From Bugula neritina (Eukaryota > Animalia > Bryozoa), in NCBI GenBank assembly GCA_964035545.1, contig OZ037765.1:3730698-3794697 (forward strand): 64,000 bases of DNA, given 5' to 3'. Of the stretch, positions 7,468-60,426 are shown piece after piece. How positions within the stretch are numbered: the stretch's first letter is position 1; every line of letters begins with the position of its first letter. The notes under the pieces are model-generated. The model was not told the DNA's origin and searched no databases. It worked only from the letters and a program-made list of their open reading frames with translations. The position numbers and the translations under genes were made by a program.

Positions 7468-7667
7468 TCATAATTGATTGTGTTTCTCTTTGCTTTCTGC
7501 TACATCCTGTTTCGATACAGGGAGTAAATAACCTTCTGCATCACATGATTGGCTGGCTTGTTGACCTCTGACATTGACAACTGAGTCATATTTGTGCTCA
7601 TCTTTTTTAGTAGTGTTTAGCTCCGTATATAAGGTTGATGAGACAACTTGGTCTTCTGGTGTTTGCA
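7468..7667 (-). CDS. IgSF receptor last exon: third YTEL-x9-YDSV cassette plus GYLLP motif and stop
   Basis: Acceptor tttcaaaag; MQTPEDQVVSSTLYTELNTTKKDEHKYDSVVNV...EGYLLPV...HNQL*. Confidence 0.85.
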
Positions 7668-10600
7668 CTTTTGAAACAGAAGAAAATGATTGTATACAGC
7701 AATTGGTTGAATTTTAGGCACAAATTATTATAACTAACATGACATAATTACAGATCTTAAAATATTGCCAAAGGCATTGAAAAAGCAAACTTAACTAAGA
7801 CGAGTTAGAGTACACCATTATGAATCATTGAACATGAAATGAAGGCTTACTTTTCGATCTTTTAACATTGCTGACAGAATCATATTTATGTTCCTCATTG
7901 TTGATGACTGAGAGCTCTGTATATGCTGCCGGGTCAGCATAAGCCTTTGATGTACCTGTGAATAGAATACAAAATTGTCAGTAGATTAGAATTCAGATTG
8001 ATCACAGCAGAAACATTCTGTAAAACATGAGATAAGTTCTCTAGAATTTTCTTAATTGTAATGCATTTATACCTACCTATATGTTCATAATAATAATAGA
8101 ATACTACTATACTATAAGATTATACATTGATTTGTGATATTGTGGGTTAATGTTGAATGCTATCATGTACTATTGACACACTCCAATTAGTGCCAACAAA
8201 CGATGGCTACAATAACTATCATACTCAGCCATGTTTATTTCTATCCACATTTTGGAGCACTTGAGAGGGCCTACTGTTACTTCTATAGTTAACCATAGTT
8301 GAAGGAACAAGGCATAGCTATAACTAAGATGTAAAACTATTTACTTCTGATGAGAAAAATTGAACTCACTTGCTGCCTGCTGTTTCATATCACCCACTGA
8401 GTCATAGCAGTGTTCATCTCTTCTAACAGCTGACAGTTCTGTGTAGGTGAGAGAACTGGACTGAGCTGGAAGTTTAAGCTGATTTCCTGGACAGAAAGCA
8501 TTGACTTTTTTATAATACTAAATTAACTGTAATAAAGTACATATATTATATTAAAAGATTTATAAGTCATTGTAATGAAAAATATTGGTATATTTTTTTC
8601 ATTTTGGGTTGCTTGCAGCTCTGATTAGTTTTGAGCCCTATTTAAACAAAACTCTACTCAACAATATAAATAGCAACTATTTCAAATTAGTATTATTTTT
8701 ATTCTATTAAGCTTATTTGTTATATTATAGTATTTATGTGGAAAAACAACGTACTTCTGATCTTCAAAACATAAAATGCAAGGGCAGCATTCAAAATCAG
8801 TAAAATACAGCCTCCGGCCACGCCCCCTCCCACAGCAGCCATGTTGGTAGATTTAGAAGAGCAGAGGGTAGACAACTCTGGTATTGTGGCATAACGACTC
8901 CATGTTATATTCCATGTAACTGTCACATTTTTTACTGCAGAAATATTATGAAAACCAAGTGTTTTATGACAAAAGTGTATTACTAGGGCAATATTACAAA
9001 AATTTTGAACAGAAAAAAGCTTTAGTGTGTCATCACATAAATAACTTCAAACCAAAGAAAAAATCAAAAAGTTCTACATAGTTGATAAAGTATTACATAA
9101 AACAAGTTTAATTACTCATATTAAAATTGATTGCAGATACCTCTATTACAATTAACATAGAGCTATACAAAGTCAGAAATTCATTTACATAAATCTAATA
9201 AGTGCATTTACTATAGTTTGAAAAAATGCTTTCACTTTTTTTAGCATTTTATACTAAATATGTTACTAACCTATTCCATTACCAGCTAGACAGCTTACTA
9301 CCTCTTTGTTACCATCCGCTAAAGAACTTAAAATCAACTCTTCTGATTTCTCTGGAGCCATGATTCCTTGTCTCATCCATGAGAATGTAGTAAGGGGTGG
9401 GTTGGAGACCAACCGTTGAGAACAGTTTAGCTTATTTATAGACATATAAGGGTTGAACTCTTTTACGATTGGTTCATTAAATCCTGACTTGACATCAATA
9501 TCTGTTAAATATAGATTTATGTCTGTTGCACTCTTTTATAAAACATAACATCATGTATTTTGTAATTGTAAATTTGAAACTATAATGAAATGATATATCA
9601 AGCAAACTTACACTTGGGTTTTCCACTCACTGACTTGTATGTATTTCCTCCCTTCCAATGAATGTGCATTCTATCAATACATAAAATACTCAGCCCTTCT
9701 CTGTCTGCTTTAGTAGGAGTGTATGTAGTGCCTGTAAATACCTGGTTTATATCTGCAACAGAAATATACATATGATAACAGGTATATGCTTATACATGTC
9801 TGACACTCAAATACAGAATCAACCTACAGAAATTGTAAGAGACAGCATTTTGATATTTATGACAACCAATTATCCTAGTATTTAAAGTAATTCATATTTT
9901 ATGCATGTGCGACTGCATGCATTGGTGTATATATATGGTTATATATGGTATATATAGGTTAAGGTATATACAGACGCGCACACAAACAGAGACATACACA
10001 TGCATAGGTTAACGTACTGTATATATAGGTCAAAATGCTGTATATATAGGTCAACATACTGTATATATAGGTCAACATGCTGTATATATAGGTCAACATG
10101 CTGTATATATAGGTCAACACACTGCATGTATAGGTCAACATACTGTATATATAGGTCAACATACTGTATATATAGGTCAACATACTGTATATATAGGTCA
10201 ACGTACTGTATATATAGGTCAACGTACTGTATATATATGAAGACTTTGGACTGGCATCTGTCGAGTTACAATTAAATTTAAATTCTTCCCCTTCTATGAA
10301 ATCTTCCGGGACATTCAGAGATATGCTGGAGGGAGCAACTAAAAGTTTACAAAACTGGTTGTATAGTTTAACAAAGTTTGTGAAACAGTAAAAGTGCAAA
10401 GATTCAAAAATCTAATTAAGTCAAAAGTTTTGCGATAACATTTATTACAAGAAGGATATTAAAATTTTGATCATAAAATCAAATAGGTAAAATTTCTATG
10501 TGACAGAGTGCAAAAAGATATTAAAGTTTATAGCATACATATATAACGTCTGATTCATGCTTTACCCAACCCATGAATTTTGCAGCACTGTTTTAAAGCA

Positions 10601-13600
10601 ACCAAAATTAGCAAAAACTCTTTATCTTAATATTATATAACATAATGAATACCTTTTACTTGTGTAAGCTGCAGGACTGAGGAATTCAAGTTCCCTGATT
10701 GTCTGTCGTTCACTTCACAATGAAACTCTCCTCTCTTGCGTATATCTGTTATATTTACTTCTACATTTAGGAGGAAGTTATCTCTCCTGGTAGCAGACAT
10801 TAAGCTACTCAGAGCGGGTCTAGAAATTCTCATACCAACCAGACCTTCAGTTTGCTGAGGTAGTATTATCCAGGTGTGTCTAGGTCTTTGTTTTCCTATT
10901 TTATAGACTGTGGTCCCACTATTATACTGCAGATGTACTTGAGTTACATGGAAGAATCCTAAGACTGTACATCTGAAGGCAATCAGGTCATGTTGATAGA
11001 AATCTGGACTCCCTTGCGAAACTGTGTTGATAAGAAGGGCTACAAAATGCAATACAGAATTTTAAAAGATACTACTTTTAGCTACACCACAAACTAAAAC
11101 TTGCACTAATCTGTAATGTGCTTGTACCATCAACCAAGTTAGCTTAATCTAATTACCTGCTAATAAAATTATCGTAGTAGGAGTGGTGCAGTAAGATAGA
11201 GCGAGTGTCAGAAAATGTGGTGGTGCGTTTTAATGCAAACTATGTTTGGTGAAAATATTATTTTTGTCTATAATATAATTTTGACACAATTTATTTATTG
11301 ATCTGCTATTAATAATAAGATGACTATATATTTGGTAGTGATTTAGTAGGATAGAGGAACTAGCTGTAGGAGGAGAAGGTAGAATTATATGATAGTGGTA
11401 AGGTTTCCAAACATTGATTTGTTGTGATTCCAAGAATAGCCTAAAGCAAAAGATTAAGGCAAGTCATAATCAGAATTAGAACTAAAGTTATATACCAAGT
11501 AATACGAATTCTTTCACTAACTTTTTACTGAGAAATAAAAATCATTTTTGAATTAAAAATTGTATTAATTAATGCATTACAAAAAAAAATTAATATTATT
11601 GCAACATATTTCAAAACTTTTTGAAATAATTTAATCATAACTGTGAAGAACTAGTTTACTTACTTAGTGGGATCTTGGTGACTGATTTGTTAGTGTGACC
11701 CCCTCTCCAGTATTGGTGGTTAAGATCATAACAGGATAGATTTAAACCTTCCCTGTGGCTTTCATTTGATGTGAGTTTTGATTCTTCCACCACAATGCTA
11801 TTGACTCCTTTAAAAAAGAATGTATATTGACTAAATAATATATACAATGTATTTCATTTATTTTGCTTAACAAGAATGCAAACCAAACACCAATTGTAGA
11901 CTACTTACAACTTGTTGACTAAAATAGTATTTAAAACACTTGAATTTTGTTAATAAACTTTATTTAAAGCTTGTTTTTAAAAAAATTATCCTACACTTCT
12001 AGTCATACTTCATTTGTTACTTTTTTATTTAATTTATTTATTCTAGCAGCTGTTGTATATAAATTCAATAACAGCATCCAGTATTGGGACATATAAATGC
12101 CACTTGATATGTTAGCTGCTTTGTAAGTAGTATGATGTGTTTTGTATATCAATTTCCTTAGTAGATAAATTGTACAACAATCCAGAGGTAATGTTGTATC
12201 ACATGAAGTACAACAGCAGTGAAATCATTTTGAAAATAGTTACATGATCTGGTACAAATAGGTGGCATTTTATTAAATATACAAGAATTTAAACTTAAAT
12301 TGCATTAGTCCACACTATAACATCAATGTTTTTGATTTTAACCTGCAGCATTAGCAATGACTGATATAACTTTATAATCAAAGATATCTTCACTAGACAC
12401 TTACTGTATTCATAGACTGACTTTGGGCTGGCATCTTTAGAAGTGCAATAAAACTCAAACTCTTGTCCTTCTATAATATGTGTTGGTGTGTTTAGAGTTA
12501 TTTCTGTAGGGGCCTCTAGAATGTAAAAGGGGATATTCACATCAGCTACTTTTTCATCTCCACATTCTGTTTCATCACTAAATTGCTACAGATGCTACTC
12601 TCAACATGCTCCTAAATTACTTGGTGGTTGATCAAAAAGACTTATCACTAAATTTATTACTCGGTCAGCGTGAACTGTTTTTTAACACACACACACATAT
12701 TATGGCAAAAGCTTTTATGCAACGAATTAAATTTGTAGGTGATTGATTTTAAAATAAACATCTTAGTAGTATATAGTATATAGTATTTAACTCAATTTTT
12801 CCAAAAGCTTTTGAGGTACTGTCTAATGACTAGTATTCCAATATAATTTGTAACTTTATATAATATGTTTATGTATGTAAATAACTAAAATGGCGCATAG
12901 CAAGTTATTGTAATGACATAACATATTATTTGCTATTTAAACACGTGACATGAATAGCAGAAGATGCATGATTTAAATGAATGAGCATAAAGATATATTT
13001 TGAGCTGAATCGAAAACATACTCTGACACAAAATGCTTAAAACAGCAACCTATTTCACACAGTTAATCAACATATAATATATATATAACTACAAAATAAT
13101 TACAGTTTAAACTTGGGTCTGAGCCAGAAAAATAATGCAAAGTTAGATCAAATTATATTAAAGAACAGTGAATTATAGAAGACAATGGCGGATGAAACCA
13201 GAGTAGCAGATGATGAGTGTAAGACATAGAGAGTAGTAGTAGTAGGTTTAGAGATGGATGACGTGGGACTCGAAGAATTATCTAAAATAAAAGTTTAAAG
13301 CATCTAGTCACAACTTTAAAACTCAATAGAGCAAGACAAACTGTAGCAAAATCTGAAACTTTTAGCACACTTTTTAAATTACTTATAAGTACCTACTCTC
13401 TGTAACAGTGTAACTAATTCACGCGTGGTCTCAGTGACCACGATGTTGCCTAAAGTATTGTTTAGCGAAACATATTGAAATTTTCTATTTTAGACACTAA
13501 AAACATCTAAAAACTAGCTATTTAACCACATGCAGTTTAGGTTAATAACTTAAATTTGACCACTACAATGACTGCAAATTGGGTAAACTTGTACAAACCA

Positions 13601-14508: not shown

Positions 14509-14616
14509 CTAAAAACATAATATTTAAGATGAAGAACTATTATAGTGTAATCAAATGATAAAATTTCTATGTTATTAATATACACCAATGTAATAAAACA
14601 ACCAAATTTAGTACTT

Positions 14617-21900: not shown

Positions 21901-24900
21901 ACTAGTAACAGTATTATAATAATATTCCAAGAAGATTAGGAGTTGTCTGATCAATGAACTCAACTGCAGATTGTAACCAACTGTAGGTTAAAACACAGTG
22001 AATTTTATTATAATGCTGAATGGTGCACAGAATTGCAATCTGGTGAGACAAGCAAATTAAATCTTAGTTCAAATTAAAAATTTTAGTTTAAAATAAATGT
22101 AGCCAACAAATGTAATAATAATTATTGTACTGCCTCTTTGGGAATAATGAGAGGCTACGTTTGACAACCTCTATTCATACCATAACTATGCTCTGCACCC
22201 CTTTGATTATAGCTTAACGCACCATTAGATTCAGTCTGTTCGATACGAAATACTATAGTTAGCTATCTCAGTAGTCTACTGCAGCTCTCCTGGTCACAAA
22301 CTATTGTGGAGCTCTACTGAGCACTTAGAAAGTACAAACATTTGAAAAGGCGCAGCAAGTATTATATGAACCTATATATAAGCCAGCTTCAGAAACAAAC
22401 TATTTTTGTAGAAACATTTACTGCTTGCAAATAAATTAAAACCTCCATTTATATATTTGAGCTTACTTTTCCTCAAAATAATTTTTGAAAGTTCAAATAG
22501 CCATGAATATTAAATTAAAAGATAAATGAAGTATCTACTGTAGCCAATGTAAACAATCTTAAAAAATGTCTACTAAATTGTCCCAGCAGGGTGCCAGTGT
22601 CTAGAAATATGGCTATAGAGAATGTGATAATGAGTGCAAAATTGCAAAAACAGGTGCAGAGATAGAAAAGTTCCAAAAGGCTGTGTTCAAAGTAGAAACC
22701 GTATTAAAGAAGTTATGCTCTCATTTTCAACCTGCAAACAAAACCAGGACTTCTAAGAACAATTGGAAAACTTTGACTATTGAAATCTTTCTGTTATGGC
22801 AGTTGAGAGCAAATCATAGCAGCATACTGAAACTTAGTATACTTGAGCAGCTATTGAAGGATATATTCTATATGTATACTATAACTTTCTGCGTAAGCAT
22901 TAACACCAGCAACAAGGCATATAATATGTAGACAACTTTATTCTAATGGAACTATTGAAGCCTACTTTTCTAGAAACAGCAAAGGGCGCAATATAGCTTC
23001 TCTCCATAGATTAATCTAGTAATCTCATGCTAAAATCTATTATTCGGGTCAAAATATTTCTATAATAATTACAGCAAAACACTTTCAAAGCAGTTAATTT
23101 TCGTCAAACTGAAGATGTGGACTCAGGAATTATATGGAGAGTAAAGGAAAAGTACGCCAACCTGTAAGAGCTAGTGGTTAAATGGACGAAGGCAACTCCA
23201 ACATGACATTCAAGTTTATGCCAGCAGTGGGAGATGTAAACTTTGTGTAGTAGCTAATGTTATGAAGGGAAAACACATTCTATATCATGGCTGCTCCACA
23301 AATAAACTACCCAGCAAGCTGGTAGTAATACATGTCAGTATCTTCTCACCTCTATGTGTTCACGGAGGTGCCAAGTGATGCCTAATGGTGATTACTTAGG
23401 ATAAAAATATAACTCTTTCAGTGTAGTTAAATCAACAAGTTATAGAAAATATAAAACTTTTGCCCCCACATTTAGGTTATATCAAATTGAATGAGTCCTT
23501 CTTTTCTTTTAAACCTATTAAATAATTTTGTCTCTTTTGAAATAAAACAATCACCATCTAGGTTGTGTTGGTCCCTTCTGAAATATAGTTTGATATTATA
23601 CAGGTTCATGAGGTTGCAGTGGATGTATAAACAAGGTTCTGAAAAATAGCGGTGTTGGTGAAAAAAAACAAAACTTATTAGCAATCCCAACACTGATTCT
23701 AAGTTTAGCTAGAGTTGCAGTGCTAATTAGTCAATGTTTATACCTTTTTAACATTAAAAAATCAATTCAGAGTATCCAAGAATAAATTAAGATATTTAAA
23801 AGAAACCAAGGCAGAGGGACATGAAGAGGGATAATGCTGATGTATGATGTAGCAACAAGCTTGTTCTTATGACTGAGAAAACAATAAAAACAGCAGATAA
23901 ATTGGCTAATAAATTAATTTGGAAAGGAGGGAGGCCACTCTATTTGTAGTTTAGCCTAATAGTCAGCCAATATGTTGTTAGAGCTATTTTGCTAAAACAA
24001 TAATGTCAAAGATATTTTGTAAGTGCACTACATGTTAATTAGAATAGCCGAGCAAGAAGGAAGCTAAAAAGGTTATACTGTATTGTATTGGAGTTATGAC
24101 ATCATGGTTTCTGGTACAGCTGTTAAAAGCTTTGCGATAGGTGAGAAGTGAATTGGATCTTTAATTCAGCCATTAAAATACTGTAAAATTTGCAGTTATA
24201 TACTAAAGTAAAACAGTAGTAAACAGTACCATGTGCCTACACATTTTTTACTGCACACTAAACGTAACTGGGAGCTATTCATACTAACCAATCACCTCTC
24301 AAATGATATTGACTTTCCATACTGAAGCCTTGTACTGCTCATTCACTAAAAAGTAGGATGTAAAGCTGCTCACTAAAACACTGAGCAGCTACAATGAAAC
24401 TGTATAGTGTATTCATAACTCTCTCACTTGGAGTAGTAGTAGTAGTAACAGCCAGTAGCCGCTGTGTTTTACCTAGGAAATCCAATATAACAACAGAAGG
24501 GAATGTGTATCATGAAAAGAGCAACATAGTTAAACGTCAAGTCTTGGATTTTTTATGTAACTTGTAAGTGCTTTAAATAATTCTGAATAACAGAAGTAAT
24601 GGGAATAAGAGAAACTTGCGGCAGTTTAAAGCCACTTAATTTTTCATTTTAGGCATTGCTCTAATTTCGTTTTGTTATGATCCATTACACGAGCATTTTT
24701 GAAAATACAAACAGTTTTAACAGATTCTGTGCCAGCTCTATATCTTTAAAATACTTTTTGCCCAAAAAAATTTCTAGGAATTTTAATTTAGGTAAAATTT
24801 TGAACTTTCCTATTTTAGCCTCATCAATGTTAAAGTCTAGACTTGACATTGAATTAATGAAATACTTATTTATTTGCTTATCCAAATTTTTATAAAAGAG

Positions 24901-25088: not shown

Positions 25089-26088
25089 ATGCATATTGCA
25101 TATATTTATCATATTCTATTATGTTTTTCAGCTGCCATTGAGGCGTTTCTTACGATTGGTAAAACTGTAACTGAGGCGGTAGATTTTATTGACAACCTGA
25201 AAGAAAAGTATCGTGGAACTGCTGTGTTGAGGATAGACAACTACTACAAGGCACCACTCGAACATCCTAGATCATGGACAGATAACGGAATTACTAAGAC
25301 ATACCCAACAGATGTGAAATCTAGTTATGAAGGGGGTTTGGCAGTTTATGGAAAAGGGGATGGAAGGGGAGTGGAGTTCTTAATCAAGTATGAGCTGAAA
25401 GTAGATGAGTATGAAATAGACGTCTATGCTTATTTAAGAGTAGAGCAAGAAGTTGCCTGGAGAAAAGAAAATAAGTTTGGTATTGGCATAGTGAAGACGA
25501 GCTCAAATCCTGACGGTATGAATTTTGGAAACCAAAATTGTATCATTTTTGTTTCATATACTCATAGAGAGAACTATCCTTCAACTATAAATAGAAGTAT
25601 CCTCATGAACTTATATTATATATATATATAATCTAGTCGAAAATATCACATTTTTATAACCTATATATAATTAGTATATATTTGCGCTACATACTAAGAT
25701 AATATCTAAAGACCATTTCGTAGGTTATGCTAATGCAGAGAACATGGATTTCATGGAGATTAAAGAGTTTAGCTCAGAATCTCACATCATCATCCACTGC
25801 TACAGGAAGCTTGTCTGTGTGTCCGGAACCTTCTCTGCAGGGCATCATGCTGAGGGACGTATTAAGATACTCCCTGTTAAAGTTAAGGATTTTGCTGAAG
25901 GGGAAATTAGAGACTGTGCAGCGGGTAGTCAAGATGAATTGAACAATGAGCTGAAATACGGTGTAGATAGAACTAGGGTCGCTGAAAAAAATGGTATCGT
26001 TCCTCCAGTGAGAGGAGATGGTGAAAGGATTAGCTCTCCAAAGATGTTCATATTTTTTGAAGGGCTCTGCATTGCATTGCTCTTGTAA
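25089..26088 (+). CDS. Actinoporin-like (conoporin/coluporin/echotoxin-type) pore-forming-toxin homologue with signal peptide and GPI-like tail; exons 25089-25515, 25724-26088 (263 aa)
   Basis: ATG at 25089 gives signal-like MHIAYIYHILLCFSAAIEA, then amphipathic helix FLTIGKTVTEAVDFIDNLKEK, then TAVLRIDNYYKAPLEHP...G....P..V....EG...GVEFLIKYEL...NKFGIG...VCVSGTF...IKILP....DFA, the motif order of molluscan actinoporin-like proteins. Intron G/gtatga...cgtag/G is phase 1. AATAAA at 26247-26252. An acceptor at 25131 means the leader could instead come from an upstream exon. Confidence 0.8.
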
Positions 26089-36472: not shown

Positions 36473-37101
36473 AGTGCTGCACTCAGTGACCTCGGTCAAG
36501 AACACGACTCAACAGATCAGTGGAAAAATACTGGGGTATATCAGGTTCATATAAGTATAACATCTGCCCCACCCCAGCATAAGGCATAACAAGTAAACTT
36601 TTGATTAAAATGATAAGAAAATTCCAAATGTGTATAACTGGCAATTTCAGCTATCGGATAAAAGTCCAGCCAAAATAACTTAGACAATGCTTACTGGACA
36701 TTCTTATAGGATATAGACTAAGTGTTTTACTAATAGAACTTTATTTTTGTTTGTGCAACTCTGCTTTATATATTTTACTGCAGGTAAAAGTTCCATTGCG
36801 CTGATACAGTCTTAAGCTTATCTACAGCTATTTACTTTTTTAAATTTATTAATAAATAACTTATTCACACGTTCTGAAATGAAATGGTATCAATTAAATA
36901 TAGTAATTACAAATTAATACAGCGTTCTATAATATACTTGAAGTGAGAACAGGCAAACAACAGTCAGTTTTACAGTCTTACTGTAGAGTTGATTGAAAAA
37001 TATTTAATAATAACTGTGTTGCCCCATCAGTGTGTTGTACTCTTTAATAAGTATGAACTCGATACACCACCTATTTTATCTGTACTATAGTACTGAAGCC
37101 G

Positions 37102-37103
<2 letters not shown>

Positions 37104-37164
<61 letters not shown>
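37104..37164. repeat. (TA)n microsatellite
   Basis: Pure TA run. Confidence 0.95.
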
Positions 37165-37165
<1 letters not shown>

Positions 37166-37970
37166 CAGTAGGTTATTAACAAAGTATAACTAATTAAACA
37201 TTAAATCCTAACCAGCACAGACACATAAGAAAACAACCCAATTGGTGCAAATAGGCTTTCAAAAACCAAAATTACCATATTAGGACAATTTCAAAATTCT
37301 CAGCAGGGGTATTAAGTCTCTGACAGGTTAGATTTAAAAACTTAAGATATTATATTATATTGTAATAAAGTGAACTGTCTGGATAGGATAACTCCTACAC
37401 TAGCTGTGAAGCTAGTAGCGTTACTTTAGTAGTATAGCCCGCGTATATTATCTGTTTCTATAAGTACAATAAAATAAGTGACATGGTTATGCTTGCCGGG
37501 TCATTAATTATACTGGCCTATTTTAAACGTAACCAGCCCACCTAGAAATGTGCATTTACATGATGGTTACTATACATCAAAATCAAAGAATATTTTGAAC
37601 CTATACATAAAAGCTTGTAGAATGGCAAGTCAGAGTAGAAAGCAGAAATTTCTAAGTTTAACAACTGCATCTAAGAAATGAAAACTGGTTCAATATTTCA
37701 AGTAATTTATTAATAATACTCAAGCGCTCAGTAACGGTTTGTTGATTAGGTAATTATGTTACTGAAAACAAATAGGTTTTGGGTTCATTTATGTAGAGCA
37801 ACTTTTGAATATCAGAAAAACAAAACATTCTAAAATACAGCACACAAGAAGGTTAGCTAGTTTAATTTCATATGAGGAATGTCAAGAGTTTAGGAAGTTT
37901 AGGAATGTCTGTTGTCATCTGTAGATTCTTGTCATTTATTATGAACTATACTTTGTTGATTAAACATCTT

Positions 37971-38726
37971 ACAGAATGTATACTATATACTTGCTAACAG
38001 AATGTATACTATACTTGCTGACAGAATGTATACTATATACTTGCTGACAGAATGTATACTATATACTTGCTGACAGAATGTATACTATATACTTGCTGAC
38101 AGAATGTGTACTATATACTTGCTGACAGAATGTATACTATATACCTGCTGACAGAATGTATACTATACTTGCTGACAGAATGTATACTATACTTGCTGAC
38201 AGAATGTGTACTATACTTGCTGACAGAATGTATACTATACTTGCTGACAGAATGTATACTATATACTTGCTGACAGAATGTATACTATATACCTGCTGAC
38301 AGAATGTATACTATATACTTGCTGACAGAATGTATACTATAGCTTGCTGACAGAATGTATACTATAGCTTGCTGGCAGAATGTATACTATATACTTGCAG
38401 ACAGAATGTATACTATAGCTTGCTGACAGAATGTATACTATATACTTGCTGACAGAATGTATACTATATACCTGCTGACAGAATGTATACTATATACTTG
38501 CTGACAGAATGTATACTATAGCTTGCTGACAGAATGTATACTATAGCTTGCTGACAGAATGTATACTATATACTTGCAGACAGAATGTATACTATAGCTT
38601 GCTGACAGAATGTATACTATAGCTTGCTGACAGAATGTATACTATACTTGCTGACAGAATGTATACTATACTTGCTGACGGAATGTATACTATACTTGCT
38701 GACAGAATGTATACTATACTTGCTGA
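37971..38726. repeat. 24-26 bp minisatellite, about 30 copies (gacagaatgtatactata[ta]cttgct)
   Basis: Head-to-tail units with no spacers; includes a 7-unit, 179-bp higher-order duplication. Confidence 0.95.
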
Positions 38727-41700
38727 TGAAGCCAACTTCTAGTAATGCATATTGATATTATTTCTACTATTTCTACCCATCAGTAATTCTTTATTTTCAC
38801 CCTTGAAAAAATACTCGCTGGTAAATACTGAATAATTTTAAACTGGGTTTAACTGGAAATTAAAATTTGCTTTCATTGGTTATTGCTAAGTAAGTGTAGG
38901 CTTGTAAGCAAATCTGCCTACTAATAATTTGCTTGACAAGCTATTTATTTTTAGGCTCTTAATACCTTGGCTTGTAGATTATAGACTGCTTATTGAAAAA
39001 AGGTTATTATCTAAAACTGGCCAATTTTATCGCATTACTTTACTTGAAAAACAAAATTGGTAGTTAATAGACTTTATATGATTCATTATAGGTCTGTATA
39101 GGGCCCTGCACTGCAGATAGCACCCATTACAGATTAATAGTTTTGAAACTATACTAGCCTTCTCATACTCAAAGTGCAGCCGAGATCATTTTAAACAAGA
39201 GACTTAAATATTATAACCAGTCTTTTTCAAATATGTATCCTTTACATAGAAGAAGACAACTACATATGATAAAAACTGATGATGTAATGAAAAGTTGGAA
39301 CTGGCTGAGGTTGAAGCTAGAACAGATGGTGAGGAAATATTGGATTTAATAAACTTGTTCCTATTAGGTTTTCTGATTCAACTATATACAGCTTTCAAGA
39401 GAATATTCCAACACCAAAACTGCAGCAAATTCATTGCATTTAAACACTTATGGCTGTATGCAGTGCTACTGTCAACAGAATATCATTTAGGCAAGTTTTC
39501 ATTTTTACAGGATGAACATTAATGAGTGTAAGCTGCTGCCATCTGCCTTTACTTAAAATCTCCTTCATCAACCATTGAGATTAGCAAGTTTTACAAGATA
39601 ATTTTAAGAAGCAAAATTTGATACCATCTCAGCCATTAAAACTTCCATTATACTTTGAAGTTATACTAAAATTATATTATATAGTAGAATCAAAGTATTA
39701 GTACTGAATTTACTATGTTGATAATATTTCTTACAGAAATAAGATAACCTTTATATTATTACCTATTTTATTATTTTTCATGTAAAACTACATGTAATAC
39801 AGAAATGAAGGCTTCTCACTCACCAGGGCATTTGACTACCGACATTTGACCTTTTAACAAAAAAGTGTGGCTATCCCTGAGCCAGTAGCCATGTGATTTA
39901 ATTTAAGCTGGACACTACTTGAACTATTATGTAACTTTTATATGAATTGTGGCCATCACTGTTTTTGCATCAAGCAACAGTACAGTTACAGCGCTGTAGA
40001 GGCAGCACTTTATGACCTATATTACGTACTGCGTAGTAGCGAGATTGCAGCTGTGCTTAAAAATAGGTTTATAGATTACTGCGACCAGTTAAACAATCTT
40101 TTTCATAGCATGCTTGTTTAGATTCTTAGAAACTTTTCAACTACTTAATGAGTGAGAGTTGGGTTTGCAGGCAGCTGGTAGTAAAATGCAACAAAACCCT
40201 TTAAGCAAGGAATAGTGTGATATTTATTCACAATTACAATTTATTATTGATAATCTAAATCACTTATATATATATAATTCAATAACCCAACAGGTAATTA
40301 ATTATTATTTTATACATGCAAATTGTGAATATAGGCATTGGCAAATGTTAAAATATTTAATATAATTTTGATTTGCAGATATTATGCAATAGTCAAATTA
40401 TTTTTTGTTAATTAATTTAATCTCATTAGCACCATTTATTTGTCAAGCAAACAGTTTGTAACTTTGCTATTGTTTTCAAATAACTTAAAGTAGATCCTTG
40501 CCTTCATGACCTGTTGATAATGATATAGACTAAAACTTTACGGAAAAACGACTTTCAACTTTTAGCTCAAGTTTTTATTTTGCTGACAAATATATTGATC
40601 ATGACATAATTTAGGAATTAATTAATCTTACTCCAACTGCATAACAACATAAAATAGTCAATTAAAGTTAAGGATGAATTTCTAAACTGACCATTATACA
40701 TACTGTAGCTGCTTTTCATGAGATTGGATTCGGGATTCTATTACTGATGTGTTCAGTTTATTCTACTAATCACAGTTATGAAACTGTAAAGTGATTAAAA
40801 ATAGCGAAATTATTAGCCTATAGTATTATTATAATAACACTTCACTAAAATGTATTGCAGGTGATTTAACTAGAATTGCTACAAACTCTCAATTGAAATT
40901 AACAATTGCAGCTTAAAAATAACAAAATACATCTCTTTCACTTTTTCTGAGGAAAGTTATTTTTAGATGTATGAGATTTACACAAATGTAAGTTTACAAG
41001 AAGCACAGCACAACCTCTTTATTGGAAATTTAGGATCAAACTGGTTTTTTTAAAGAAACAAACTGAGGCAATGAGAATATTGCAAATTGTGACGGCAGCA
41101 GCATCATGCACCCTTATCTCCTCCTTCTCAATGTTGTTTGTCTTATTATGAAAAAGTGAATTTAGAATAAACCAGATAGATAGTTATATATAGGTAAATG
41201 TGTGACTGTGACTAAATTAGCAACCAGGTTACTACAAACAAATGGATAATAAGTTTAAAAAAGAAATTTTCTTTTCGAAAACTTTGCATATATGCATAAA
41301 ATGACTGGCTGTAAAATATCAAGTTGTTGAAATGCTTGCAGCAACCTCTTCCACTGTGAGGATCAACAGCAGCGGTGGTGACGTATTTGAAAATACAAGT
41401 AGTGCCAAGTTTACTAAAGAATAGCTGAGCCACTCAAACTTAAACTATAATACAGGCCATAGTCTAGCACTGAAATTCTAGAACACAGGCTTTTCTCATT
41501 TTCTCCATTGCTGCACCTACTTCAAATCTGCAGCTAAAAACGTTCATCGTATAGATGTACAGCACTAGTTGTTATTACTAGCCCTATAGCACAGAAACAA
41601 ACATATAAATTACTCAATTCGAATACGAGTATTAAGAGGCCATGCAACACAGTTTCTACTAATTTTAGTGCTTATAGCCATTGCCCAAGGTCAGCAACTA

Positions 41701-42199
41701 AGTTATTCTCTATAACTGAACCCAAAACCTGTTTGTTTTCAATGAGATACAATTAGTCAACAAAACATTACTGAGCATTTGAGTATTACTAAATTACTTG
41801 AAATATTGAACCAATTTTCATTTCTTAGATGCATGGTTGTTATTAAACTTAGCAATATCTGCTTTCTACCCTGGCTTGCCATTCTAAAAAGTAAAAACTA
41901 GTAAACAACAGCTGGCGTCCTGCAGTATAAGTTGTCTGTGTAAATTTGCAAACATACAATTTTCAGATGTAATTTTTAAACATTTAATTTAGGAAATTTG
42001 AAAAAGCAGCTCAATTTACTCAAAAATTCAAAAGGTGAAAGAAAATAATACCCACTACAGAATATACACAACTAATTATTGCAAACTGTATGTATTTCGC
42101 AGTACAACATATAAAGGAATGTATATGTATCATGATGATAGCTAAGATATTATGGAAAATGTAATGGGTTAAATTTACATGATTTATTGCAGAAAAAAC

Positions 42200-43310
42200 T
42201 GTCCTTCAAATCCAACCTCAACCTCTACTTGACAAGGAACAGACACCAGCAACGATGTCTAATTGAGGTTCTGGATACAACCAGGCAGACCTAGCAGCCA
42301 TTGATTAACACCGAATTTCTATACATACTCAATGAATAACAATTAGAACAGTCTATATAATGTGCACAAATCTTAAATCGCTTTTATAAATAAATCTGAA
42401 CTTTCTTTCAACTTGCACTGGAAAGATAATATGACTTGTGGTTACTATACTAGAGTATAAGACAAGTATATAAAGAATTTCAACTATACTCTAAACCAAA
42501 ATATACCAAGAAAGAATTAAAGAGCTTCAGCTATTAAAATGTTGCCACTACTGCACCTATATGCCATGGAGGTGGATGTAGGGCAGACACAAATCAATAC
42601 ATTAGCATTTGCTGGTGATATAGCGCAGGTAACAAGTGAAGAGGAACTGCAACTGAGAATAAACCTGTGGGATGCGACTTTCAACAAGTATGGAATAAAA
42701 GTCAACTACAGAAAAGCAGAGATACTGGTGTTTAGTCATCATTAAATAAATACCAACATTTAAGTACTTGGGTATTGCTACAAGGTGTGGCTTATAGTAA
42801 GTATGTGTAGAGGATACCAACAGAATAGACAAATTCTCTACTAATGTCAAACTAAACTATAAAAAACATTTTGGCATATCTTATAAAGTTAAGCAAATTA
42901 TATGTATATAGGCATGATATGACTAATATTGGTTTACAGAACTGCATGCATGAAATGCTCCTATCAAATTCTATAAACAATTTTGATATCTCAGACAAAA
43001 TAGCGAACTATATGCAGACCTAGGCATTGAAGAACTGAAAAACTCAATCGAATACAGCTAGTTAATTATAGTACCGACATATCTGGAGATAAAATGAAAA
43101 ACATCCAACACAACTATCAAAAGCAAAATTAATAGAAAACATCCACAGGAAGATTCCAGAAAAGATGTGCATTGTTGATACAATTGTTGATACAAAATGA
43201 CGTCAGTCTGAAATGAGTAGAACTGATAATAGTATATACATTAGGACAGAGATAGTTGGGAAAACCCGAGTTGTTCTGTTAGACAAGTCTGGGCATTGAC
43301 AAGAGTTTTG
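42200..43310 (+). mobile_element. Decayed non-LTR retrotransposon (RTE-like) reverse-transcriptase fragment
   Basis: INTLAFAGDIA (degenerate FADD)...EEELQLRINLWDATFNKYGIKVNYRKAEIL followed by FKYLG; outer boundaries approximate. Confidence 0.8.
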
Positions 43311-43597
43311 TGGGAGACAGGTATTGAAGCAGCCTATCATGTGATGCCATATGGGTTGTAAACATTATATAGAAAAGTAGTGGACATCATGCTAGATTCC
43401 TTATATGATGTTTAAAATAATTACTTCACTAACGTTATTTTTTTTTCTTTATAATAGTGCAAACGACTTCTATAAAAAAAGACAGCTATTGAGTATTGTG
43501 AGGTTTCACTGTAGAGTATTTAACTCTGACTGAGGTTGTATATACTAATGAGTAAGTGTGTCACTGGGTTGCATGGAATGGTTAACTGGTTCTTTAC

Positions 43598-43711
43598 TTA
43601 TCTTATATGCCGTGAAACCTAAATTAACCCAAATTATACCAATACAGAAACAAAATACAAACAAAACAATAAATGTAGGTAGTGTAAAATAACTATGGTG
43701 GAATACAAAAC
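43598..43711 (-). CDS. Candidate transmembrane exon for the 53-kb V-domain gene
   Basis: Acceptor cctgtattccag, donor gtaaag, 114 nt, phase 1-1; GFVFHHSYFTLPTFIVLFVFCFCIGIIWVNLGFTAYKI. Confidence 0.4.
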
Positions 43712-45486
43712 CTGGAATACAGGAATTTATGAGACAAAATATGAAATTAAATAAATGAAACTCTACTGACCTTTGCTCTCCTGCTGACACACTATAATTA
43801 TTATGTTATGCGACATTTATGACTACTAACAACAGAGATCTGAGAGTGACTGATCCCAAAGCTGCAACTAAATCCAGTACACATCCGTCAGTTGGCTACA
43901 TGACAAAACTTCCATTGCCATTAAATTACAAGCCATTTAAAAGCCACACAAGCAAACATGGATGAGGTGCAACAGCAAGTTGCGCAGCAGGCAATCCATA
44001 AACCCGCATTTCCCTAACCACAAAGCCTGGGGGATAGCCGAGTGAACTAAGAGATGACTATTATATCTTTACAGCAGCAATTATTCCTATAAGTCAAGTT
44101 GATATAATATTTCTGCAGGCAGCAGTCAATTGTAAAATGCTCCTGCAGTAGGCAGCATTGTTGTCACCTTTAAATTTTAATGACATCACAGCTAACTAGT
44201 GATAATAGATTCAATTTTGGTTTTGATTTGCCAATGAAATTTCCAAAGGTTAAAAAGTTTCATTTGAGAGCACAAAAGTATATTATACCATTTTAATTTT
44301 TTCTATGAAGATATAAAGCCTAAGCTTCAGATGTTTTAGCATTTTTATAAAAATGATAAAATTTGTTTTTGCATGTCATTACTTCTTAATTTGATTGACT
44401 ATTTCTATCTCGCTGTGGCATATGCTATATTTTATGTTTAAAATGGCAAACTTATATAATAGTTTTTGTTATATTTTTTTTAGAAACTTTGAAAAACAAT
44501 GAAATATAGACATAGTAAGAGAAATAGTTAATCATAGATAAAGAGAAATAAAGCCAATATCAAGTAAAACAATCCTGTTTTTTAAATTTTTAACCAATTT
44601 TCACACATTTCCATCTTTCACCTTATTATTACAATTAGTCTTATAAAATAAAATAGCCTCAACTTTGGACTTTTGCAAGTTACTCTTTACGTGCTCAATG
44701 ATTAAGTATCTGATTGATGAGCTATATTTTACTAGATACTATGGTTGAAATCACCACTCATCAATATACTGAGCTTTACTATTAGTTTTGTGTGTTTTCC
44801 AGCCCTATATAGAAGTAAGCAACTGCTGCTTTGACAGGCACTAAAAGTGATGTTACATCTTCTGCAGATAAACTACTTGTCTACTAAAATTAGCATTCAT
44901 ACAAGAAATGATAAGTTTATCTTATCACAGCTAACTGTCAAACTCCTTCTTATAGCAGACGTAGAATAGCAAAAGGTTATAGCAGCAGTTTGTACTGGTT
45001 AATATAATAGAATAGGAATTAGAAACAACTTATAGGTAATGAGTAACAGTTGAGTCAGAAACTTTCACTGGTGATAACTGGTCTTTCTTTTAGCTAAATG
45101 CTTGAAAACAGCTTTAGAGTTATTAAATCTACACTAGCTAAACTTGGTTAATATATTTTAAAAAGTTATGTAATACTGTCAGGTATGACAATCTTATGGT
45201 TACTAAAAGCGTATAAAACATATTTTAGTAAAAAAACGGCTGTCCATGCTGCCTCTCTGGGCTAAATTTAGGTTCAGACTATGTTTAAAAATATACTTTA
45301 AGCAATTTTTAAACACTGTCAAACCTAAAGATAATAATAGGTTTTGTATTTTTGACAGTTAATGAGATGTAAATCAAAAAAAGAATTTACCACATTTGCT
45401 ATAAAATTGGAACCCAGTCTGCATTATTTGTGTGTGCTTAGCAACCATGTAATCTAAATCAGTGGCTTCTGCTAGTGTAATAACCA

Positions 45487-49772: not shown

Positions 49773-52700
49773 GTTAGTTTTTAAAAACATAATTTAAACA
49801 GTTTTTAAAATAGTGTCAAGCCCAAAATACAATTTTAGATTTCATGATTGAATATTTGATTTTATTTTACAGCTCAACAAAAACAGGGGTTTACTAAAAG
49901 AATGGAATTTAGTTTTTATTATTAAAGTCTGTTAAGTAATAAGTAAGATCACTACAATGTAATGAACTGGTAACAATTTAATCTAAATTATAATCCTCCA
50001 TTACACAAGTAAAAAACGGCAAATGAATTAACGGCTCAGCAATTCACATATACATGTATATAAACTACTACAGCTTTCAACACTGTCACACACAGTTATT
50101 CTGCTCCATATATCTGATTATATATGACCCATTATTCAATATGTCCTATATAATAGTCCGAAGGTAGCCAACAGAACTCTTAGCTGTATGTACACTGACT
50201 CATACAGATACACTTACAGCTACTACTACATTTCATCACTCAATATTTACTCACAACTCACAGCTACAGAAGAAGTACACAAATTATCTTATTTTACAAA
50301 AAGCATTACAAATTCTTGTACCACTTTCAATGCAAGCTATCATTTAAAGCACAAGAAACTTGTAACCGACTATGAAAGCGATAATTAGAGTTAAATATAA
50401 TATTATATACTCCAAATTTTTTAATTTACAGTACATATAATATTATATCTGAAGTATTTATTCAGAGTTTCAAATATGCCAGTTTAATAGCAAGAGTTGA
50501 CGTATATCAAGTGTATTGTATCAATCATTGACCTATAATACTAAAAAATACTCAGTCCTGTTTATTCTTACTGAAATCATTTAATACTTTGAAATTTGAA
50601 GAACATTTATCAATTGAACCTACAATAGCCCTATAATATAGGGCAGCTAATAGCCAGTGTAGACCAATTAAGTTCATTGAGTAGTGTTCTATTATTACAA
50701 GAAGCTGCGAAATAGTTTCTAGAGTTTGCAAATATGGCAGTCAAGAAAGAATTTAAAATAGATATTGCAATGTGTGCAGTAACATATTAGTGGGTACCAG
50801 AATAGAATGCCTAAAGAATACTGAATTGAAATTTGCAATTTTTAATGCTTTAAACTTACCCAAACAACATCTCAGGAAAGTGAAGAAGGCAATAAGTCAT
50901 TAAACTCCACACCTCATGTGGTGATAAAATACCAACCAGTAAGCATTACTAACTCAACTAGAATAAACTTACTGATCAAAGAGTTAGTCATAATAAAAAG
51001 TTAATACTGCACTCAGTGACCTTAGTCAAGGACACAATTTGGCAGATCAGTCGAAAAGTACTCAGATATACGAATAATCAGGTTCATATGAGTATCCAGC
51101 TGTCCTGAAGCAAGTGAACCTTTGGCAAAAATGAGAAGAAAATTTCAAATAAGCACTGATCGAAAATTGAGCTATAGAATAAAGACTAGACTAAATAGCT
51201 GCCACCAGCAGATGAATTGGCTATAAATGTAGAGGCTTAGCCGATGCTGACTGAACATTCTGAAAGGATGTAAGCTGTAAGTGCTCTACAAGAGTAATAA
51301 CATGTAATGTAAAACTTTTTTTTGTTTTTGCAGCTCTGCATTATATAGCTGCAGGTAAAAGTTCCGTTGTGCTGATGGCTATGCCATCTTGCTTATCTAT
51401 CATTATATATACTTATTTAAATAATGATATAGTGGATAACTTATTCACATGTTTAGAAATAAAATTGTATCAATTAAATAAGTAAATAAAAGTTTAAACA
51501 CCTTTATCTAATATACTTAAAGTGAGAACACAGCAATCGGACATTCAAATTTTCAAACAGGGAAATAAGGATTTGATTGAAAAATATTTTATAACAATTT
51601 TGTTGCTCCAATCAGTGTGTTGTACTTGCTTTTATGACCTTTTAATAATAATATAGACTAAAAATTTGCAAAAAAGTTATTTGCAATTTTTAGATCAAGT
51701 TTCTATTTTGTTGGCAAATATATTTAGATTAGATAATATAATTTCGCAATTATTTAATCTTACCTCAACAGCAATAACATAAAATAGTCAATCATGTTAC
51801 ATGCAGCTTTAGAGTCAAGTATAGATTTCTAAACTGACATATATAATATATGCTGTAACCACCCTCATGAGAATAGAAGAGATTCTAAATTACTGATGTG
51901 TTCAGTTTATTGTACTAATCACAACTATAACGCTGCCATGTGATCATCAGTAGGGAACAATATCATTATAGTATTATTATAGTAACACTTCATTTTATGT
52001 ATATTGTAGGTGATTTAATTAGAACTATAACTACAAGTACTTCTAAAATTTTTAGCTAATTCTAAAAAGTTTTATTTTTTAACAATGCTATATTGGAGCT
52101 ATTTATGAGGATACAAAGCCTAAGCTATATAGGTGTTTTAATACTTTTATAAAAAAGCATGAGTTTTGTTCTTTTATTTTGTTACTTCTTGATTTAATTG
52201 ACTATTTTTATCTCACTGAACAGTGGTATTTTATGCTTATAATGGCAAACTAAATTTTCACATCACAATTTCAAAGAAATTGAAAAATATAATGAAACAG
52301 ATAATTAATAAGGATCATTATGAATTATAGGTGATCAGAAAAAAAGCCAATCTTGAATAAAACAACTCAGTTATTTAGATTTTTGTTGTACAATTGATGT
52401 TCATGCATTTTCAGCTTCACATTTTTATTTCAATTAATCATATGAAATGAAATAGCCCAACTTTAGACTTTTGTGAGTTATTCATTGCAATTAATAACTA
52501 GGTATCTGACTGTTAACTATCATATCCGTTTTACTAACCAGCAATATCAATTTAATTGGTAAACTGAGCTTTACTGTGTATTGCAATTTCAGTGGCTCTT
52601 AGCCAATTTATGCAGTTTTTATCTCATTAAGCCGTCTAATTCCTTTTAGCATCTTTGGAATAGCAAAAAATTATAGTGGGCAGTTTGAACTGGTCAATAT

Positions 52701-52960: not shown

Positions 52961-53145
52961 CCTTATATATTTTTTGGATAAATGTGGATCTATCGATCAG
53001 ACCTAAACCAATGATATATCCACTATAATTAAAAATGTGGATTTTTCAACCTTGTATAATCAATTACACAACAGTGCTTTTATTATTTAATTATTATACT
53101 TAAAATTAAGGGTTAAGTAATATTTCATATTTTTTGTAAACTTAC

Positions 53146-53812
53146 CTTTTATTTCTTTAATCTCTATCTTAGTTGAAGAAACCTCTCCAGAATTTGTTTC
53201 TTGTGCCCGGCAGGTGAAAAATCCTCTTATACTCTCATTTGTAAAACTTAATTTAACATCAACTGAAAAACCAGTTTCACTACCTATTGCCGAACAGTAG
53301 GTGGCATCAATATTTGTACCATCTATCCCATTTGAAGCATGTAGCAGTTCATTTATACTTTCCCAAGCTCCAAAGATCTTTACACACCCAGCTTTGTATA
53401 TTTGGTCTCTGTTGTAGTAATACAAACTTAAAACTGTCAGTTTCTCAAAGCCAGTTGCACTGCATGTGAACGTAACTGGTTCACGAATATAAAAAGCACG
53501 TGCCCTGGACGAGTTGTGCGTGATGACCACAGATCTACTGGCAAAAGATGCTAAAATAAGTTAGATAAATTTCTTTGTAGTTATATGTGTTAGAAAGTTG
53601 TTAGTTTGAATCCAAACATAACATGTTAAAGCTAGCAATACACCAGAGAACCATTTCACAAATTGCACCAATTGTTAAATTTAAAAAAGCTACACTATAG
53701 AAGCAATTAGCTTTAAATTGCAAGAAGTGATCTTTTTAAGGTTATTTAAAAATATCTACTTACGTGAACCAAAGATTCCTATATATATCAAGAAATAGAG
53801 ATATCCCAGCAT
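53146..53812 (-). CDS. IgSF paralogue: signal-peptide exon (53764-53812) + V-like Ig exon (53146-53550); downstream exons uncertain
   Basis: MLGYLYFLIYIGIFGS/gtaagt joins in phase 1 to PSFASRSVVITHNSSRARAFY...FTCSATG...IRGFFTC...EIKG/gtaagt (405 nt); paralogous to the V-like exons at 10.7 and 14.1 kb. Confidence 0.85.
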
Positions 53813-56025: not shown

Positions 56026-56130
<105 letters not shown>

Positions 56131-59100: not shown

Positions 59101-60027
59101 TTTTTTAGTTATAAAAATATCCAACTATCAGTATTTTATCAAATATTCGCTTGCCATGGTTATGAATAGTATAAACCTCTCAACAATTGTGGGAATTACA
59201 TGCAGAATTTTAAAATCGATATGTTTCGATTTATATCAACCCTTAACAAAAGAAAACATAGCTAAAACCTAAATATAGATACTTCTGCGTGCTTAATTTT
59301 TATTGGAAAAATTGGGCCTATACATAATCTGATTGAGATGCTCTTTATTTGTATTAGTCTTATACTTTTTGGTTTTATTTTTTTATGCTATAATATATTA
59401 TTCTACAGCTCTCTTTTTATTGATTATTATAATTATAATTATTAGTAGACGTAACGGAGAGTTTCAAGTGCTGGGTACTCTAAAAATATTGTATGTATAT
59501 ACTTTGAAAGTTTATTCTATATTAGCTTTTTTTTAACTACATGCCCTCATTTTAAAACCACTTTTCAAAGCATGCATGAATTCGTATTATATTTGCATAA
59601 TATTATTATACATAGTATGTGTAATGTAGCTTAAATAGCCAACACATGCACTGTTTCTATAGCACATGAGACCTATATATACCATATGATGAGCTGAAGT
59701 GTATGTTGTAAGAGTATGCATAAGTCTCGAATAATGATACATATCTGCTTTTGTCACATGTTACAGGCTTGGCCTTTGCTATCTAGAGACCAACACCTTT
59801 TCATCTGCACCTGTGTAAACACTTTCTTAGCCGCTCTTGAGTATAAATTGCTATAGCTTCAGTATAATTTTATTACATGAAAATGGTGCATGGTTTACAA
59901 ATTAGAATGTGTAAAAAACAAATCATACACATTATAATTGAAAGCATATCTTTGACCATTAAGTGTACATGGTTCGTAACTGTATCATCATAAGTAGAAA
60001 ATGATTCCAAGTTAATGTTAAACTTAC

Positions 60028-60426
60028 CCTTTTAATGTATAGAAAGTCATGTATTTGTCCACTTGAATATTTTCATTACTAAGCTAGTACCCACTACATG
60101 CATGCAGGTTCAGAGCTGTTTGCAACACTACAATCTAATAGTACTATGTGACTTTTCTAATGATAAGCATTGTTACAATATTAGCAGTACTATTTCTCTT
60201 TACTATTTTGATTTTATAAATGTCATAATATCCTTCAACCTGCACCTTTCTTTGAACTATTAGGTGAAGCTCTTGCACATTCCCAGACTGCATTAATTGT
60301 ATGAGAGCTCATAGTATGCATAGTGTAGTTGTCTGCACCACCAAGGCACACTGCAAGTTATGAAGTACACCCAATTATAATAGTGAGCTTGGAGCAGAAC
60401 AGTTAGCCTAGCAGATTACCATTGTA
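60028..60426 (-). pseudogene. Candidate decayed V-like Ig exon
   Basis: 399 nt between AG and gtaagt; YFITCSV near the start and HACSGY...TLKG at the end place Cys residues as in the intact V exons; several stops and frameshifts. Confidence 0.4.

Follow-up and report, generated by a model that had tools for sequence, protein, structure and literature searches.

An immunoglobulin-like receptor locus of the bryozoan Bugula neritina, probably the decaying edge of a tandem array, with an actinoporin-like gene inside it

We analysed a stretch of 64,000 nucleotides from the bryozoan Bugula neritina (contig OZ037765.1, here C1; C1:3730698-3794697), referred to below as the window, which carries exons of an immunoglobulin (Ig)-like receptor gene on the minus strand and a gene for an actinoporin-like protein on the plus strand. 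The genome measures 216 Mb and contains about 30% G+C. The original prediction for this DNA had proposed a diversified receptor family with a linked cytolytic effector. From the evidence presented here, we consider it fairly probable that in the window a tandem array of Ig-like receptor genes, which belong to a large family confined to this lineage, is decaying at its edge, and that the actinoporin-like gene is unrelated to these and lies inside the array by chance. The receptor would then be a type-I membrane protein whose fast-diverging V-like domains bind a variable ligand, upon which tyrosines resembling the immunoreceptor tyrosine-based activation motif (ITAM) would be phosphorylated and would recruit SH2 proteins. 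The isolated exon V53, a diverged duplication and the broken V exons found past the end of the window would be the leftovers of further copies. The actinoporin-like product is predicted to start with a signal peptide and a pro-piece that terminates in Lys-Arg, followed by an actinoporin-fold (AF) domain, a stalk and a C-terminal signal of the glycosylphosphatidylinositol (GPI) type.

Receptor and toxin-like genes were searched for exon by exon. Inspection of splice sites delineated a receptor gene of eleven exons running from 14508 down to 7468 on the minus strand (Table 1), with canonical acceptors and donors throughout in phase 1-1. The predicted product follows the plan V-C2-V-C2-C2-TM-tail, in which a V-like domain 1, a split domain 2, a V-like domain 3, a split domain 4 and domain 5 precede the transmembrane (TM) helix. 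All three intact, diverged minus-strand V-like exons described in the original prediction (V14, V10 and V53) were recovered with AG/GT sites in phase 1-1, and the tandem tyrosine motifs that it had noticed correspond to three YTEL-x9-YDSV cassettes, each on a phase-1 exon of its own. A gene on contig C9 (L050) has the identical exon order, namely V, Ig-a, Ig-b, V, Ig-a, Ig-b, Ig5, TM and tyrosine tail. Identity to the window receptor amounts to 39-62% for its Ig-a, Ig-b, domain 5 and TM exons and to only 25-32% for its V exons. Moreover, the V exons on C9 are arranged in pairs approximately 1.95 kb apart in every unit.

Because the C9 genes share both this exon order and the 1.95-kb pairs, V14 and V10 most likely encode the first and third domains of a single receptor, and not the two paralogous receptors that had originally been envisaged. 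It is rather unlikely that V14 and the split Ig exons behind it constitute a separate truncated gene or pseudogene, with the functional receptor starting at V10. Such an arrangement would accord with the identity of only 28% between V14 and V10, given that the two V exons of the C9 gene look far more alike (a visual impression, not quantified); phase 1-1 exons can be joined in any order, and no public RNA run contains the junction from Ig-b to V10. However, the double-V plan recurs in the C9 genes, the V14 frame of 135 codons is intact with its splice sites kept, TM and tail exons are missing behind the first unit, and no convincing leader exon was seen at 11.06-11.66 kb. For the single, longer receptor, the leader-exon search brought up nothing beyond unverified candidates, such as an ATG at 19581.

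Several repeats accompany this gene. A minisatellite of 21-nt units occupies 9999-10237 and begins at the donor of the domain-4 Ig-a exon, and that donor is therefore repeated many times; contigs assembled from the public run X1 show many small length differences over it. The intron immediately upstream of V14 contains a perfect 90-nt repeat at an offset of 86 nt (14687-14862). On C9, the tail exon of L050 (L050:5053-5457, C9:3186552-3186956, minus strand) holds seven NSPYTE[LM]-type repeats followed by YTEM-x9-YDSL and YVNI, such that the tyrosine cassettes are multiplied within one exon in the C9 gene and occur as separate exons in the window. No tRNA or Rfam family was found in the window, and ten other open segments of the window gave no Pfam domains.

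To what extent the V-like exons resemble Ig domains can be judged from their alignment. Within the window they are mutually 26-29% identical (E 1e-10 to 1e-16). The first cysteine is nearly invariant and the second invariant, the two lying 84 residues apart; an R/K-G-x-F/L-x-C motif leads up to the second cysteine and a Gly-Glu pair is conserved in the last strand. The exons thus display the cysteine pair of strands B and F, the hydrophobic residue two places before the second cysteine and the G-strand feature (Gly-x-hydrophobic) of an Ig V-like domain. V14 and V53, as well as the C9 copies, have an inner cysteine pair; V10 has lost the two residues together. At the place of the canonical strand-C tryptophan, about 12-18 residues past the first cysteine, the exons have Leu or Tyr, and their sole invariant tryptophan sits 34 residues past that cysteine. 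Pfam Ig_3 matches 5 of 25 family V exons at E 0.03 or weaker and V53 matches Ig_2 below threshold (see below), the other exons giving no match. In the Atlas, language-model features of the V-like exon lie near Ig, V-set and I-set clusters at 0.90-0.93, a lead only. Domain 5 of the C9 gene matched in the PDB nothing but Ig C2 domains of CD22 and nectin-1, weakly (E 0.13-0.24) and with the usual ANPP-x-W motif.

A genome-wide search, as suggested in the original prediction, showed that the receptor belongs to a large family. The profile built from the three window V exons gave at least 100 matches, mostly on C9 at 0-1.1, 3.07-3.25 and 4.13-4.20 Mb, with others on C1, C2 and C4. The domain-4 Ig-b exon has at least 53 matches, all within V-exon clusters, and the V-C2-V-C2-C2 plan is common to dozens of C9 genes. 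At C9:3157903-3161756 one strand carries over a dozen V-like matches, several of which are fragmentary, spaced at about 490 nt; they may represent a poly-V member. Outside this genome, a word-indexed search of 5.8 billion proteins recovered, for the receptor and actinoporin-like families alike, only exon-sized open reading frames (ORFs) from one Joint Genome Institute (JGI) sample. No orthologue of V14 or V10 was found in that sample. The JGI contig nearest to V53 (L063) was rejected as an orthologue; it is 67% identical and not collinear, hence a paralogue of no use for a rate test. A metagenome scan with the V profile gave no match, and the contig retrieved with domain 5 (L062) was a false match of bacterial appearance. 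The clustered, diversified Ig-like family with tyrosine tails and pseudogene exons that had originally been proposed is thus borne out, and the literature searched contains no description of such a receptor family.

The V exons diverge faster than the other exons. Pooled ratios of nonsynonymous to synonymous differences (pN/pS) among the C9 paralogues were 0.57 for V, 0.35 for Ig-a and 0.46 for Ig-b, and two hypervariable patches flanking a conserved DDTVW motif in the V exons reached local values of approximately 0.8-1.1. As judged from these ratios, the V exons appear to be under relaxed or diversifying pressure, which does not amount to proof of positive selection. An overall pN/pS below 1 would also be expected if the family consisted of conserved adhesion or neural molecules of the Ig superfamily instead of immune or allorecognition receptors, and V-C2 ectodomains with tyrosine tails are likewise found in adhesion molecules such as nectins, nectin-1 being one of the two weak PDB matches. 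Nevertheless, we regard this alternative as unlikely. It is difficult to reconcile with the dozens of tandem copies and pseudogene exons, with the lack of matches outside the lineage among the 5.8 billion proteins, with the faster divergence of the V exons and with the extreme divergence between haplotypes described below.

Haplotypes at the receptor were compared in run X1, the sole public run to contain this DNA and probably the source of the assembly, used as contigs at least 85% alike over the one region 8650-14600 (5951 letters). Contigs of a second haplotype, at a depth of about 50-70 equal to that of the reference-like contigs, were strongly different. At the two ends of V10, 28 of 212 and 19 of 182 letters differ (10-13%), and in Ig-b together with its intron 32 of 333; one intron is replaced. 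In the two exons for which the differences were listed, nine changes in the TM exon alter four residues and six in Ig-b alter two. At 85% likeness or more, the range from 12.8 to 14.6 kb, including V14, shows a single contig of haploid depth, and X1 offers no contig of the second haplotype over V14 itself. Since contigs of equal depth differ so strongly, the locus is very heterozygous in the sequenced individual, and at V14 it is either hemizygous or hyperdivergent. This degree of divergence, a figure with no genome-wide baseline behind it, fits a polymorphic recognition receptor.

The orphan exon V53 and its surroundings point to the decay of further receptor copies. No Ig-a, Ig-b, Ig5, TM or tail exon was found between 15 and 53 kb, downstream of V53. 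The segmental duplication noted in the original prediction was confirmed by self-BLAST, in which 34981-37041, 40497-40875 and 44304-44716 are collinear with 49774-52512 at 68-76% identity. A probable decayed V exon reported at 60 kb was not found. A hidden Markov model (HMM) of 25 family V exons, run against the open segments (E up to 10) and a six-frame read-through in which stops were written as X (E up to 1 for each domain), yielded only the three intact exons in the window. About 15 decayed V14-like or V53-like exons with stops and frameshifts instead lie past its end, at C1:3794698-3819500, on the same strand throughout and with no other exon types interspersed. A dispersed repeat of 170 nt occurs in two copies inverted relative to each other (75-80% alike), one at 16532-16703 and the other at 60528-60699, and the latter may have been the source of the earlier V-exon call at 60 kb.

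It is highly improbable that V53 and the V exons upstream of it serve as mutually exclusive alternative first V exons in a Dscam-like manner, with the toxin-like gene nested in an intron. These exons do share strand and phase 1-1, other exon types are absent from the intervals that separate them, the intact V53 has good splice sites, and the C9 run of at least nine V-like matches at 490-nt spacing, some of them fragments, looks gene-like. On the other hand, most of the upstream copies carry stops and frameshifts, and an intron of 38.6 kb would be long for a 216-Mb genome. We therefore retain the view that V53 is a remnant of a further copy.

Other repeats were noted in and around this part of the locus. 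A tandem array at 37912-38726, with units of 26 and about 179 nt that are 92-99% identical, lies in one of the insertions that interrupt the older duplication copy. The segment 46956-47649 is 80% identical to L052:3966-4645, a spacer between V14-like pseudo-exons past the window, and no V exon was detected beside the window copy. No decayed V exon was found at 48.1-48.4 kb, where the DNA resembles the V-bearing stretch beyond the window. Finally, window positions 1-880 recur 1080 bases upstream (L055:8921-9800) at 99.7% identity, a very recent tandem duplication.

We next consider the actinoporin-like gene. Its three exons (Table 1) encode a protein of approximately 298 residues, as counted from exon lengths, and exon 3 has an alternative in-frame acceptor at 25724. 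The N-terminal helix in exon 2 has a hydrophobic moment of about 0.5. Exon 2 has at least eight further copies in the genome, and a profile search of 1.84 billion representatives identified seven full-length relatives of 240-299 residues, including one from Watersipora subatra (P0010, GCA_963576615.1). A relative is also known from the 'BRYA16' metagenome. Exon 3 matches the C-terminal half of the family profile (hhalign probability 96.7%, E 3.9e-10), and a nine-copy profile of exon 2 matches the relative P0006 (E 2e-6). Over its whole length, the JGI contig L057 can be aligned with the window at 83% identity; in exons 2 and 3 the identity is 92%, with no gaps, as compared with 76-87% in introns and flanks, and the hydrophobic tail and stop codon are retained. 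The ratios of nonsynonymous to synonymous substitution rates (dN/dS) against L057, 0.35 for exon 2 and 0.24 for exon 3, show the gene to be under purifying selection. At the end of exon 1 (24557-24570) a 7-bp duplication has given rise to an in-frame donor, GTAACT at 24557, followed by an out-of-frame consensus donor, GTAAGT at 24564; L057 has a single consensus GTAAGT at the in-frame place.

The C-terminus ends in a short hydrophobic tail in 6 of the 7 relatives, whereas P0011 has a genuine TM helix and, behind it, a short tail. By inspection, the window protein combines a signal peptide and a short C-terminal hydrophobic stretch, preceded by small residues, with no cytoplasmic tail, and we infer that it is GPI-anchored. 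Elsewhere in the genome, a minus-strand copy at C3:29000908-29001471 (L013) matches residues 14-204 of P0005 within one open frame of 247 codons; this part is without an intron, because the frame is free of stops. A feature search of the Atlas with P0005 was blank.

In order to probe the fold of this family, the structure of P0006 was modelled with AlphaFold2 (predicted local distance difference test score, pLDDT, 78; predicted template-modelling score, pTM, 0.74). Foldseek, which had been suggested together with structure prediction, was applied to this relative and ranked FraC, Fav, equinatoxin II, sticholysin II, bryoporin, Nakanori and HALT-1 first (E to 6e-10, for FraC), with template-modelling scores by target of 0.62-0.78 (equinatoxin II 0.76). 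The model deviates from the soluble forms of actinoporins by a root-mean-square distance of about 3 angstroms, and its nearest Atlas clusters carry PF06369 or Nakanori. On the strength of this model, the actinoporin fold, that is, a beta sandwich with two helices and an amphipathic N-terminal helix, holds for the family as represented by P0006. Exon 2 folded alone with nine sequences was uninformative (pLDDT 48).

In terms of sequence, the protein is apparently outside the actinoporin family. Neither the window exons nor the relatives match PF06369 or any other Pfam profile (E up to 1), the family profile has no PDB sequence match (E up to 10), and the window exons, like seven of eight relatives, lack the P-[WYF]-D motif of the phosphocholine or sphingomyelin site. 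Rather than being a soluble secreted protein of about 20 kDa, the window protein has a stalk and a C-terminal hydrophobic anchor, as do all seven relatives. No membrane-anchored actinoporin-fold layout is described in the literature searched. Consequently, of the antisense actinoporin-like gene in the original prediction, the fold and the conserved hydrophobic tail stand and the sequence marks of a cytolysin do not. Most likely the protein is a surface-tethered binder of membrane lipid or glycan and not a secreted cytolysin.

Less than 10 kb separates the two genes, which are arranged head to head, and this raises the question of whether the arrangement recurs. The comparison rests on genome match lists, whose counts are lower bounds, and the distances that follow apply among the matches listed. 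Four toxin-like copies at C9:4.308-4.346 Mb are 104-142 kb away from the family exon closest to them, at 4.204 Mb, those at C9:9.279 and 9.282 Mb about 5 Mb from family exons, and that at C2:22.67 Mb about 4.5 Mb; the copy at C3:29.0 Mb is on a contig without a family exon. None of these eight other copies has a family V or Ig-b exon within 100 kb, and in Watersipora there is no V-like exon less than 10 kb from the homologue. For the toxin-like gene, the closest copy is at C9:9.279 Mb (64-68% identity), and the closest receptor Ig-b exons are at C9:4.14 Mb (54-57%). Since the closest relatives of the two genes sit apart, there is no sign of block duplication.

These results do not support the linked cytolytic effector of the original prediction. 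It seems very unlikely that the locus is a module in which the receptor senses non-self, the tethered actinoporin-like protein acts as cytolytic effector and selection has kept the two adjacent. The head-to-head arrangement, the pore-former fold with its amphipathic helix and the probably colonial habit of the animal would favour such a module, as would the second toxin-like group on C9, which lies near the receptor cluster at C9:4.137-4.204 Mb. However, the adjacency is repeated neither at the other copies nor in Watersipora, the two genes were not duplicated together, and the sequence marks of an actinoporin are lacking. A conserved receptor-effector pair or functional coupling is therefore unsupported, and the juxtaposition most likely arose by chance, through duplication in a region rich in gene families.

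A number of observations weigh against our explanation of the locus as the edge of a receptor array with an unrelated gene inside it. Among public RNA runs none contains the window, such that splicing from Ig-b to V10, the leader and the expression of either gene are predictions. As no leader exon was found and no RNA run covers the stretch, the receptor gene model is inferred from splice sites and family conservation. The V-like exon is Ig-like and probably V-like, yet this is not proven and the signals are weak: V53 matches Pfam Ig_2 below threshold (E 0.0019, 18.8 bits versus a cut-off of 27), and PDB sequence searches with the V profile and V53 were blank. The evidence for the actinoporin fold comes from a relative approximately 25% identical and not from the spliced protein of the window, and in view of the 7-bp donor duplication the window allele may splice poorly. 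Finally, two of the five places with toxin-like copies, the window and C9:4.31-4.35 Mb, are within about 140 kb of family clusters, which may reflect a loose, non-random clustering in a gene-family-rich region.

Table 1. Features of the receptor locus and the actinoporin-like gene (coordinates within the window)
Feature	Coordinates	Strand	Evidence
V14, V-like domain 1, four cysteines, 136 codons	14101..14508	-	Phase-1 acceptor and donor; family HMM 139 bits; aligns with V10 and V53
Ig-a, first half of C2-like domain 2	12405..12515	-	Phase 1-1; 55-58% identity to Ig-a exons of C9 gene
Ig-b, second half of domain 2	11664..11807	-	Phase 1-1; 46% identity to C9 Ig-b; donor phase compatible with V10 acceptor
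V10, V-like domain 3, inner cysteine pair lost	10653..11039	-	Splice sites; alignment; HMM 118 bits
Ig-a, first half of domain 4	10228..10338	-	Splice sites; 55-62% identity to C9 Ig-a; donor is first unit of 21-nt minisatellite
Ig-b, second half of domain 4	9609..9752	-	Splice sites; C9 comparison
Membrane-proximal C2-like domain 5	9271..9501	-	Splice sites; 45% identity to C9 Ig5, E 8e-19
Juxtamembrane stretch and transmembrane helix	8755..8934	-	Splice sites; 39% identity to C9 TM exon, E 6e-13
Cytoplasmic cassette 1, YTEL-x9-YDSV	8370..8486	-	Alternative acceptor possible at 8465
Cytoplasmic cassette 2, YTEL-x9-YDSV	7851..7955	-	Phase-1 exon
Cytoplasmic cassette 3, YTEL-x9-YDSV then YLLP, stop codon	7468..7667	-	Phase-1 exon
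Actinoporin-like gene, exon 1, signal peptide and pro-region with Lys-Arg site	24394..24556	+	ORF, donors; intron at same place in Watersipora homologue
Actinoporin-like gene, exon 2, amphipathic N-terminal helix and first part of beta sandwich	25132..25515	+	92% identity to L057, gapless; dN/dS 0.35
Actinoporin-like gene, exon 3, rest of sandwich, stalk, 14-residue hydrophobic C-terminus (GPI-type), stop	25739..26088	+	hhalign; dN/dS 0.24
V53, orphan intact V-like exon, four cysteines	53146..53550	-	Canonical AG/GT, phase 1-1; HMM 139 bits; alignment
Older duplication copy, interrupted by insertions	34981..44716		Self-BLAST, collinear pieces
Other duplication copy, directly downstream of V53	49774..52512		Self-BLAST

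Bryozoans are colonial and are said to show allorecognition (PMC9546547), and the literature searched names no bryozoan recognition genes. In such a colonial animal the receptor family may reasonably be considered a candidate for the recognition of non-self: dozens of clustered, fast-diverging receptors with ITAM-like tails, pseudogene exons and deeply split haplotypes are concrete candidates for recognition molecules. A bolder proposal, which we put forward as quite unlikely, is that the V-C2-V-C2-C2 family constitutes a bryozoan colony-recognition system governing fusion and rejection, that this locus, hemizygous or hyperdivergent at V14, is among its most diverged and polymorphic members, and that GPI-tethered proteins of the actinoporin fold act as surface effectors or ligands at contact zones. 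If it were true, bryozoan allorecognition would become molecularly testable for the first time. The anchored family would in itself represent a pore-toxin scaffold used as a cell-surface protein. Tight linkage within one window is no evidence of shared function, and among the matches listed the pairing does not recur elsewhere in the genome.

In the precursors of cnidarian toxins a signal peptide is followed by a pro-piece that terminates in Lys-Arg, and the predicted actinoporin-like precursor begins in the same way. It further resembles actinoporins and other AF-domain proteins, such as HALT-1, bryoporin, Nakanori and the actinoporin-like proteins of fish, in its beta sandwich, amphipathic N-terminal helix and second short helix. 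It differs in a cysteine-rich strand that is particular to the family, in the stalk, in an anchor of the GPI or TM type at the C-terminus, and in its length (about 298 residues compared with about 175 in actinoporins). The receptor tail recalls vertebrate receptors with ITAMs or immunoreceptor tyrosine-based inhibitory motifs (ITIMs), in which paired tyrosine motifs are likewise carried on a short tail behind Ig-like ectodomains. None of the three window cassettes matches the consensus Yxx[LI]-x(6-8)-Yxx[LI], since their spacing is x9 as opposed to x6-8 and the second motif ends in Val; they are thus ITAM-like only. In addition, the window has three cassettes on separate exons, whereas its C9 relatives have seven YTE[LM]-type repeats and YVNI in one exon.

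A further parallel is with the Alr genes of Hydractinia, which are clustered and encode an N-terminal V-like domain barely recognized by profiles, together with ITAM- or ITIM-like tails, and which include pseudogenes (Huene et al., 2022, PMC9546547). In both cases, clustered genes of a colonial marine invertebrate would encode a V-like domain that is hard to recognize, further Ig-like domains, a TM helix and ITAM- or ITIM-like tails, with many pseudogenes and strong diversity. The resemblance is one of architecture alone, and we do not claim homology. In contrast to Alr, the receptor described here appears to have two V-like domains and repeated YTE[LM] tail cassettes, and it belongs to another phylum.

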